From Macrostomum lignano (Eukaryota): DNA of 64,000 nt. Position numbers and translations under genes: made by a program. The notes below the pieces were generated by a model, which was given only the letters and a program-made list of their open reading frames with translations, was not told where the DNA came from and did not search any database. This document shows positions 1 to 45,843 of this stretch, piece after piece (the first letter of the stretch is position 1; each line of letters starts with the position of its first letter). The stretch spans positions 1 through 64,000 of the forward strand of contig NIVC01000371.1 of NCBI GenBank assembly GCA_002269645.1. Direction: 5' to 3'.

Positions 1-42
1 GCAGTTCTCGCATGACACCTACAGCTGGCCTTTGTGGAGAAT
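1..42 (+). CDS. Cadherin exon 1 in window (partial): QFSHDTY[fs]QLAFVEN
   Basis: Donor GTGAGG at 43; phase 0 joins DSSII of the next exon. One C must be added near 22 to read PxFxxxxY..VEN through. Confidence 0.7.

Positions 43-45843: not shown

Follow-up and report, generated by a model that had tools for sequence, protein, structure and literature searches.

We analyzed a window of 64,000 nt of Macrostomum lignano DNA (contig NIVC01000371.1, positions 1 to 64,000, plus strand), in which a first-pass annotation, made from the letters alone, had seen a giant CDH23-like cadherin. Our analysis indicates that the window probably carries one multi-exon gene for a giant single-pass cadherin of the CDH23/PCDH15 ("Usher-type") group, which would work by an apical-link mechanism. 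The gene model runs on the plus strand from 1266 to 45843 and comprises 33 frame-compatible exons and 3651 codons, followed by TGA. Membership in the CDH23/PCDH15-type cadherins that bear a membrane-adjacent domain (MAD), the superfamily proposed by the first-pass annotation, is supported by the architecture of the predicted protein and by the homology of its MAD. As in the CDH23/PCDH15/CDHR2 group, the ectodomain consists of extracellular cadherin (EC) repeats only up to the MAD, a ferredoxin-like MAD precedes a single transmembrane helix, and EGF, LamG, or GPCR modules are not found. The class I PDZ-binding C terminus of this group would be provided by the predicted ending STAL, which depends on the 3' exon chain.

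Ectodomain, membrane-adjacent domain and tail

The principal features of the model, all on the plus strand, are as follows.

1266..45843 (+): cadherin gene; spliced model, colinear with a protein of the nemertean Tubulanus (P0127) and with an M. lignano paralogue
1281..37800 (+): 30 EC repeats in tandem, model residues 6-3230 (EC profile, Pfam)
37804..38738 (+): MAD, ~110 residues, residues ~3232-3334, with one intron inside (profile, AlphaFold2, Foldseek, Pfam)
38805..38894 (+): transmembrane helix, followed by KRKAQRRKR (read from the sequence; aligns with the transmembrane helices of eight relatives)
45829..45840 (+): C-terminal STAL, fitting the class I PDZ-binding pattern S/T-x-hydrophobic (frame-compatible 3' exon chain)

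The ectodomain had been estimated by eye at about 30 EC repeats. A hidden Markov model (HMM) trained on 13 clear repeats of the protein itself finds exactly 30 back-to-back units in the 3651-aa model, with zero gaps between them. The first of these enters at HMM position 23, its N-terminal strand lying upstream of the window and being cut at an exon boundary, which bears out the earlier view that the gene continues upstream. With Pfam PF00028, 25 units pass singly (1053 bits and E = 0 for the whole protein), and some of the rest are matched by related cadherin families; a Pfam scan of the whole model gave no match to EGF, LamG, GPS, GAIN, or 7TM families, as the first-pass annotation had stated for EGF, LamG, and GPCR modules. 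A canonical DxNDN-type calcium-binding motif is present in ~18 of the 29 linkers between ECs and missing from 11. The ectodomain contains 83 N-glycosylation sequons, which had previously been described as very frequent; composition-matched shuffles contain 37 +/- 6.

The segments that the first-pass annotation had quoted from behind the EC array lie in the exons at 37603-37953 and 38580-39169, with the transmembrane helix in the latter. A word-indexed homology search with the last EC, MAD, transmembrane helix, and tail returned no matches, and a search with the MAD alignment returned almost only unnamed fragments of 70 to 260 residues, which were of no help for classification. PF23206 (PCDH15_12th) is the sole Pfam family that touches the MAD of the window protein, and its threshold is passed by the Tubulanus orthologue (36.4 bits) and by the relative P0124 (37.1 bits). 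A profile built from six sequences, the MAD of the window protein and those of five spiralian relatives, was searched against the PDB. This profile matched mouse CDH23 MAD28 (8TRI, EC25-MAD28) nearly gap-free at E 8.3e-15 and the PCDH15 MAD12 structures at E ~5e-9 (58 versus 39 bits), with no other PDB match below 0.1; the MAD of CELSR1 in the PDB (8VY2) was not matched. Aligning the PCDH15 MAD to the spiralian profile requires two insertions. When the profile was extended with starfish and ostracod sequences and the transmembrane helix, PCDH15 came first (1e-24), with CDH23 at 3e-14. The strings RVKIVINEIPDRV, LLSNITGA, VNFAQTE, and IDENKEQLRNLF, which the first-pass annotation had ascribed to CDH23, are indeed found in mouse CDH23 MAD28 (PDB 8TRI).

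Structure prediction points in the same direction. An AlphaFold2 model of EC30 plus MAD, computed with an eight-sequence alignment, has a mean predicted local distance difference test (pLDDT) of 87.6 and a predicted template-modeling score (pTM) of 0.76, with secondary-structure elements in the order b-a-b-b-a-b. The nine best Foldseek matches in the PDB are all EC-MAD structures of PCDH15 and CDH23, clearly apart from ordinary EC pairs: PCDH15 EC11-EL/MAD12 (6C10, 6EET, 6BXZ, 6C14, 6C13) at TM-scores of 0.72-0.74 over ~220 columns, and CDH23 EC25-MAD28 (8TRI) at 0.64-0.69 over ~200-220 columns. Since the alignments span ~200-220 columns, the arrangement of EC and MAD relative to each other matches as well. 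Judged by model and alignment together, the segment behind the EC array is a predicted ferredoxin-like MAD, the outcome on which the earlier proposal had been made to depend beforehand.

MADs occur in PCDH15, CDH23, PCDH24/CDHR2, the Fats, and the CELSRs, but abut the membrane only in the first three, and the MAD of PCDH15 induces parallel dimers (bioRxiv 10.1101/460097). In the window protein, one exon encodes both the second half of the MAD and the transmembrane helix, so that no module can fit between the two. Because the transmembrane helix directly follows the MAD in one exon and the CELSR1 MAD is not matched, Fat and CELSR can be set aside, and Dachsous appears less likely. A planar-polarity or growth-control cadherin of the Fat or Dachsous type is, in our estimation, very improbable. 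It would account for the EC number of 30-32, near the 32-34 of Fat, for the automatic NCBI names of the relatives from Lingula, Pecten, and Mizuhopecten ("protocadherin Fat 4," "cadherin-related tumor suppressor-like"), and for the matches of some ECs to Pfam Cadherin_FAT4_N. However, PF25374 and PF23592 are generic EC variants that match the nemertean "cadherin-23-like" protein too, EGF and LamG modules are missing between the last EC and the transmembrane helix, and the MAD profile matches only the MADs of CDH23 and PCDH15. Dachsous, moreover, is absent from the list of MAD-bearing cadherins (10.1101/460097), whereas the window protein has such a domain.

The cytoplasmic tail of ~265 residues has no Pfam match and ends in STAL. 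The exon encoding this ending lies 6.5 kb past the transmembrane exon and is reached via three more frame-compatible introns. One could suppose that the span is divided among several genes, such as a cadherin that stops at the TGA at 39171-39173 (...SGDNV) and, farther downstream, an independent "STAL" gene. The donor of exon 30 (GTGAGT at 39170) does overlap this in-frame TGA, distances of 2-2.7 kb separate the last three exons, of which one has a weak donor, and UniProt gives the fragment A0A1I8I6L5 the unrelated name LNP1. Yet this same fragment (P0121) is 100% identical and reproduces the junction 39169/41186 exactly, joining exon 41186-41359 to the transmembrane-proximal exon right after ...SGDNV, and the frameshifted UniProt model A0A1I8FLM7 holds all four 3' exons in order (including 41186-41359, 44064-44231, and 45663-45843). 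The tail motif DEDGNP[IV]IIVNS, encoded by exon 31 (window 41187-41222), is identical in the flatworm protein and in the tail of its nemertean orthologue, and an S/T-x-hydrophobic C terminus is found in 6 of the 7 relatives with a complete end (ETEV, VTSF, LTRF, ITHL, NTVL, VTSF), so that relatives likewise end in class I PDZ-binding motifs. We consider a division into several genes extremely unlikely. With UniProt models joining the 3' exons, the tail motif shared with a nemertean, and PDZ-type ends in the relatives, STAL (45829-45843 with its stop codon), which had been read directly from the letters, is well supported as the predicted PDZ-binding end.

Related acidic (D/E)G..VVV..S..DDW and juxtamembrane NP[AL][FY] motifs occur in annelid and brachiopod relatives (P0124, P0126), and the tail motifs look like an undescribed conserved signature of this spiralian clade. 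As a side observation, the name "LNP1" carried by the 155-residue cadherin tail fragment in UniProt (A0A1I8I6L5/A0A1I8HAC3; P0121, P0132) looks mis-transferred.

Gene model, relatives and neighboring sequence

A scan of the window for cadherin signature motifs (DxNDNxP, LDRE, DxDxGxN) confined them to plus-strand open reading frames between 1251 and 37033, which are short, numerous, and spaced by repeat-rich DNA. The exons were assembled with a dynamic-programming chainer that drew on codon log-odds, GT-AG sites, and a mask for tandem repeats; doubtful junctions were curated by eye, and the model was then compared with the M. lignano paralogue and the nemertean orthologue. A GT[AG]AG start is seen in 26 of the 32 introns, and a terminal AG in every one. 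We estimate that the window holds ~95% of the coding region, its 3' part; the 5' end of the gene, encoding the signal peptide, EC1, EC2, and the start of EC3, should lie upstream. The exons, all on the plus strand, are as follows.

1266..1368 (+): exon 1 in the window, part of EC3 of the full protein; acceptor CAG, donor GTGAGT; counterpart in the paralogue at L001:1055-1159, 63% identity
2916..3034 (+): exon 2; consensus donor AAG/GTGAGC; paralogue exon ends at the same ...QVKV
5101..5276 (+): exon 3; 1-nt frameshift after 5136 (GCC^TGG, one C missing), frame 0 then frame 2
5911..6039 (+): exon 4
9048..9209 (+): exon 5
10757..11101 (+): exon 6
11523..11608 (+): exon 7; alternative acceptor 11496 adds 9 aa
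11689..11773 (+): exon 8; inclusion restores a stretch of 26 residues
14485..14937 (+): exon 9; junction FLQLK/FTDPD agrees with FLQIKFTDAD of paralogue P0002
15095..15598 (+): exon 10
17100..17214 (+): exon 11
19195..19635 (+): exon 12
19902..20143 (+): exon 13
21344..23023 (+): exon 14, the largest, 560 codons, ECs 10-15 (window count); acceptor AAG/GTGAAC; junction SLVAL/VNATDPD resembles SVVKLNSTDPD of paralogue P0002
23215..23469 (+): exon 15
23905..24045 (+): exon 16
24385..24743 (+): exon 17; 1-nt frameshift after 24608 (GGG run, one G missing), frame 0 to ...SKLVYRVG, then frame 2
25063..25612 (+): exon 18; alternative donor 25591 makes it 7 aa shorter
27026..27141 (+): exon 19
27222..27440 (+): exon 20
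27880..27978 (+): exon 21
28365..28484 (+): exon 22
29078..29871 (+): exon 23
30284..30686 (+): exon 24
31937..32194 (+): exon 25
33434..33556 (+): exon 26
34761..35276 (+): exon 27; 1-nt frameshift after 35112 (CCCC run, one C missing)
36111..37006 (+): exon 28
37603..37953 (+): exon 29, remainder of EC30 (the last EC, window count) and first half of the MAD
38580..39169 (+): exon 30, second half of the MAD, transmembrane helix, and juxtamembrane cytoplasmic part
41186..41359 (+): exon 31, cytoplasmic; 100% identical in P0121; motif DEDGNPVIIVNS in the Tubulanus orthologue
44064..44231 (+): exon 32, cytoplasmic, proline-rich; frame-compatible; content in P0122 in the same order; donor GTCAGG non-consensus
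45663..45843 (+): exon 33, last coding exon, stop TGA at 45841-45843; in-frame alternative acceptor 45678; content follows GNSWDLS in P0122

Several exons of early models proved spurious on inspection and were dropped, namely 1984-2300 (in a repeat), 11689-11699, 33641-33672, 35641-35655, 40668-40739, 43818-43843, and 44442-44550. Conversely, the exons at 1266, 23905, and 27026 had been missed by the first two dynamic-programming models and were added. A junction between exons 2 and 3 via the non-consensus donor 3062 was replaced, as comparison with the paralogue shows a frameshift instead. Tandem-repeat arrays, with units of 2-208 bp (Tandem Repeats Finder periods) and up to 2.6 kb per array, occur in 27 of the 32 introns (1369-45662); 60% of intron bases are called tandem repeat, and each intron tends to have its own repeat family.

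The best database matches of the largest exon are M. lignano proteins, and the same gene is represented in UniProt by A0A1I8FQ02 (P0007), A0A1I8FLM7, A0A1I8JR86, and A0A1I8I6L5. In these models, long identical stretches are broken by out-of-frame translations of the same DNA, the source assembly being indel-ridden; to judge from these entries, public data for this gene are short, corrupted, uncharacterized fragments only. A colinear M. lignano paralogue with 58% identity (P0002, BOX15_Mlig004619g2) lies at the end of contig NIVC01002323.1. At this locus (L001, NIVC01002323.1:166564-183778), the paralogue occupies 1055-17000; its exon structure is the same where it can be compared, its introns are shorter, and it is truncated where the contig ends.

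An exhaustive HMMER scan of 1.8 billion representatives, with MAD, transmembrane helix, and tail as the query, matched only 11 proteins. Besides M. lignano fragments, these were a cadherin of Owenia (1161 aa), two scallop proteins (3545 and 6148 aa), a "Fat 4" of Lingula (3345 aa), a "cadherin-23-like" protein of Tubulanus (3989 aa), an ostracod protein, and a "protocadherin-15-like" protein of a starfish. The Tubulanus polymorphus protein (XP_074649083.1) contains 31 PF00028 stretches and a MAD passing PF23206 and has no EGF or LamG. In blastp it aligns with our model in one high-scoring segment pair of 3593 columns (33.3% identity, 1527 bits), which spans the first window residue through all ECs, the MAD, the transmembrane helix, and ~120 tail residues with no gap larger than 26 residues, while off-register alignments reach at most 452 bits. 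This single in-register alignment shows orthology and, indirectly, argues strongly for one gene, as the first-pass annotation had assumed, rather than several.

The relatives also indicate how much of the protein is missing. The landmark KAYQTDKP in the first EC of the window recurs as KAYQIDRP, KAFQIDKP, and MAYQTDKP in the proteins of Tubulanus, Mizuhopecten, and Owenia, each time in the third EC; those of Mizuhopecten and Owenia have signal peptides. Because the landmark EC is the third in these relatives, the full protein probably has ~32 ECs, with two ECs and a signal peptide encoded upstream of the window, in line with the 31 PF00028 stretches of the Tubulanus protein. The blastp offset to the scallop protein P0125 (+28), taken at face value, would leave almost nothing missing upstream; we rejected it, as the KAYQxDKP EC is the third in P0125, P0124, and P0127 alike.

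The first-pass annotation had not anticipated that the reading frame requires three 1-nt repairs (after 5136, 24608, and 35112). Each of the three breaks is the loss of one base from a run of C or G, as is typical of errors in long-read assemblies. The M. lignano paralogue reads on unbroken at 5136, and at 35112 a model from another M. lignano assembly (P0123, ...QRQSPEFADVG...) implies five Cs; on these grounds, we take the breaks to be probably homopolymer errors of the assembly and not pseudogenization. Short "introns" at 24585-24649 and 35115-35149 were rejected in favor of 1-nt frameshifts, since they would remove core EC strands. Were this copy instead a pseudogene or a duplicate in decay, function would have to reside in the paralogue or in some other homeologue of the duplicated M. 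lignano genome. The three frame-breaking deletions and the existence of a 58%-identical paralogue are in keeping with that idea, but apart from these three sites, 3651 codons over 33 exons are open, the splice sites are preserved, the nemertean orthologue is matched evenly over the full length with gaps of at most 26 aa, every break is a homopolymer deletion, and the other assembly implies an intact C run at 35112. We give the pseudogene interpretation little credence.

Several further elements were observed in the window. Downstream of the cadherin gene, at 59398-60546 (+), a 383-codon open frame, belonging to a separate gene, carries a C-terminal Pfam bZIP_2 domain (E 7e-11, RERNNVAVRKSRAKTR), the basic region of which looks C/EBP-like. 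Just past the cadherin 3' end, at 47024-47641 (-), a 206-codon open frame without a Pfam match includes the coding-like stretch YELVAGFHLDEGVIVSYHPFR. A 17-mer satellite, GTGGGTGTCGGAGTGGG, is found in an intron (10303-10711), and its reverse complement and the variant GTGGGTGAAGGAGTGGG occur within an intron 30 kb downstream (41460-41738, 42090-42781). Very long (ACT)n/(ACA)n microsatellites lie at 44408-45608 (1.2 kb, last intron) and 47800-48275 (0.5 kb, downstream of the gene). Finally, at 61032-62803, direct arrays of CAAGGGGCTTTAGCAC (61032-61426, 62341-62803) flank the inverted pair CGACGTTTGCC (61434-61708) and GCTGGCAAACGTCG (62134-62334), an arrangement suggestive of a composite repeat or of mobile-element ends.

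Family placement and proposed function

Placing the gene within the group is less straightforward, and a number of observations weigh against our interpretation. With regard to the gene model, the donors at junctions 44231/45663 and 25612/27026 are non-consensus, and the three frame breaks could also mark a decaying copy. With regard to the domain, the MAD of the window protein scores 17.3 bits on PF23206 (E 0.005), under the gathering cutoff of 27, and in a single-sequence phmmer search of the MAD region against the PDB only the EC part was matched and the MAD was not. The EC1-2 tip, which defines the CDH23-PCDH15 handshake, lies outside the window, and a whole-protein phmmer search against the PDB gave no in-register pattern with vertebrate CDH23 EC fragments. 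The last three ECs and MAD of the nemertean orthologue are colinear to both families but score 116 bits with PCDH15 EC9-MAD12 versus 67 with CDH23; the MAD profile thus leans to CDH23 and the EC-MAD end of the orthologue to PCDH15, which is contradictory. A neighbor-joining tree of 11 MADs, in which Cad88C and CDHR2 sequences were not included, has supports of 7-60%, too low to use. One published tree, furthermore, finds CDH23 only in deuterostomes and assigns the protostome genes to a separate bilaterian Cad88C family (PMC10734073).

In addition, the N-terminal EC1-2 of relatives, searched against the PDB, gave generic or weak in-register matches to CDH23 EC1-2, with no family-specific signal. 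Cad88C has been called the fly CDH23 orthologue (PMC2649435), but its DIOPT scores are 2-3 of 15 (PMC10898740). The signals conflict as to whether the window gene would be a strict orthologue of CDH23 or belong to a sister or PCDH15-side lineage.

Considering the architecture as a whole, the most economical reading is that the protein would form a long, calcium-dependent extracellular link between apical protrusions, anchored through PDZ domains, and a tip-link or microvillar function may be envisaged. In this model, the EC array would be a calcium-stiffened filament of roughly 140 nm (~4.5 nm per EC for 32 ECs), with ~11 noncanonical, possibly flexible linkers, projecting from an apical membrane protrusion. 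The MAD would lie next to the membrane, where it may promote parallel dimerization as in PCDH15, and the EC1-2 tip would bind a partner cadherin on a neighboring microvillus or cilium. Through its STAL end and the conserved motifs of its tail, the link would be fastened to harmonin- or whirlin-like PDZ scaffolds and to the actin core. The likeliest sites may be the microvillar/ciliary collars of sensory cells and rhabdomeric photoreceptors. A planarian gene that carries the annotation cdh23, cited here by this annotation only, is reported to have its strongest expression in photoreceptors, with further expression in ciliated mechanosensory stripes that depend on pou4-2 and in epidermis (PMC12626421). 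Because this gene is reported from such cells, sensory collars and rhabdomeres would be the first places to look. For the adhesive organ suggested by the first-pass annotation, the data speak neither for nor against.

Alternatively, the protein may serve as a nonsensory link or in adhesion, be it as a brush-border intermicrovillar link (CDHR2/CDHR5), a regulator of microvillus length (Cad99C), or a homophilic cell-cell adhesion molecule. The combination of MAD, single transmembrane helix, and PDZ-binding end is the architecture of CDHR2 (PCDH24) too, in Drosophila, cadherins of the Usher type act in the microvilli of follicle cells, epidermis is among the reported expression sites of the planarian cdh23-annotated gene (PMC12626421), and CDH23 itself is reported to be capable of homophilic binding (PMC6487693). 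On the other hand, a ~140-nm filament exceeds the usual intermicrovillar spacing. Known brush-border cadherins are much shorter, CDHR2 having 9 ECs. We regard this alternative, the leading rival to a sensory link, as unlikely, though far from negligible; the sequence itself holds nothing that separates a sensory from a nonsensory role.

The gene is unsurprising in kind, given that other spiralians have annotated relatives and that a planarian "cdh23" is already known. What the analysis adds is a nearly complete, curated model of a gene publicly held only as short, frameshifted fragments, in a regenerating flatworm with good RNA interference tools: a giant cadherin that combines a membrane-adjacent module of CDH23/PCDH15 type with a PDZ-binding end and with tail motifs that also occur in a nemertean. 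This makes it testable whether Usher-type extracellular links exist in protostome sensory collars, photoreceptor microvilli, and other apical protrusions, and it bears on the disputed age of CDH23. We tentatively offer a further hypothesis, possible although on balance doubtful, in which the spiralian clade would be the true protostome counterpart of CDH23, the bilaterian ancestor would have had such a protein with ~32 ECs and a MAD that paired with a PCDH15/Cad99C-like partner, and the link system would be at work in flatworm collar receptors and rhabdomeres. If true, links between CDH23 and PCDH15 would be older than the split of protostomes and deuterostomes, which goes against the recent claim that CDH23 is confined to deuterostomes.

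Among known systems, Fat and Fat-like cadherins have a comparable EC number and a MAD-like domain after the last EC, but, unlike the window protein, carry EGF and LamG modules before the transmembrane helix. CELSR/Flamingo proteins have a seven-pass adhesion-GPCR moiety, whereas the window protein has one transmembrane helix and no GAIN or 7TM match. PCDH15, which makes up the lower portion of the tip link (and, with it, Drosophila Cad99C), shares a homologous MAD12, the best structural match (6C10, 6EET, 6BXZ), together with a single transmembrane helix and a PDZ-binding end (STSL in the CD1 isoform of PCDH15), but PCDH15 has 11 ECs versus at least 30 in the window protein; the starfish "PCDH15-like" protein is more distant from the window protein than the spiralian giants are.

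CDH23 (otocadherin), which makes up the upper portion of hair-cell tip links, resembles the window protein in its very long unbroken EC array with mixed canonical and noncanonical linkers, a MAD directly before the single transmembrane helix, the lack of EGF and LamG, and a long, otherwise unconserved tail with a class I PDZ-binding end (ITEL). Its MAD28 is the best PDB match of the spiralian MAD profile, and the predicted EC-MAD fold matches 8TRI. The two differ in EC number, and the EC fragments are not in register. With 27 ECs and ~3350 aa, vertebrate CDH23 is shorter than the window protein (3651 aa and 30 ECs in the window, ~32 ECs in all), in agreement with the first-pass annotation.

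Direct relatives are the giant cadherins of other spiralians, which have the same MAD-transmembrane module and PDZ-binding ends (Tubulanus XP_074649083.1, Lingula XP_013401573.1 "Fat 4 X2," Mizuhopecten XP_021355742.1, Pecten XP_033754776.1, and Owenia CAH1795491.1). These are uncharacterized predictions with inconsistent automatic names, and their EC number ranges from ~8 (Owenia) to more than 50 (Pecten, by length); the Tubulanus cadherin is colinear with the window protein over all ECs and has tail motifs in common with it.

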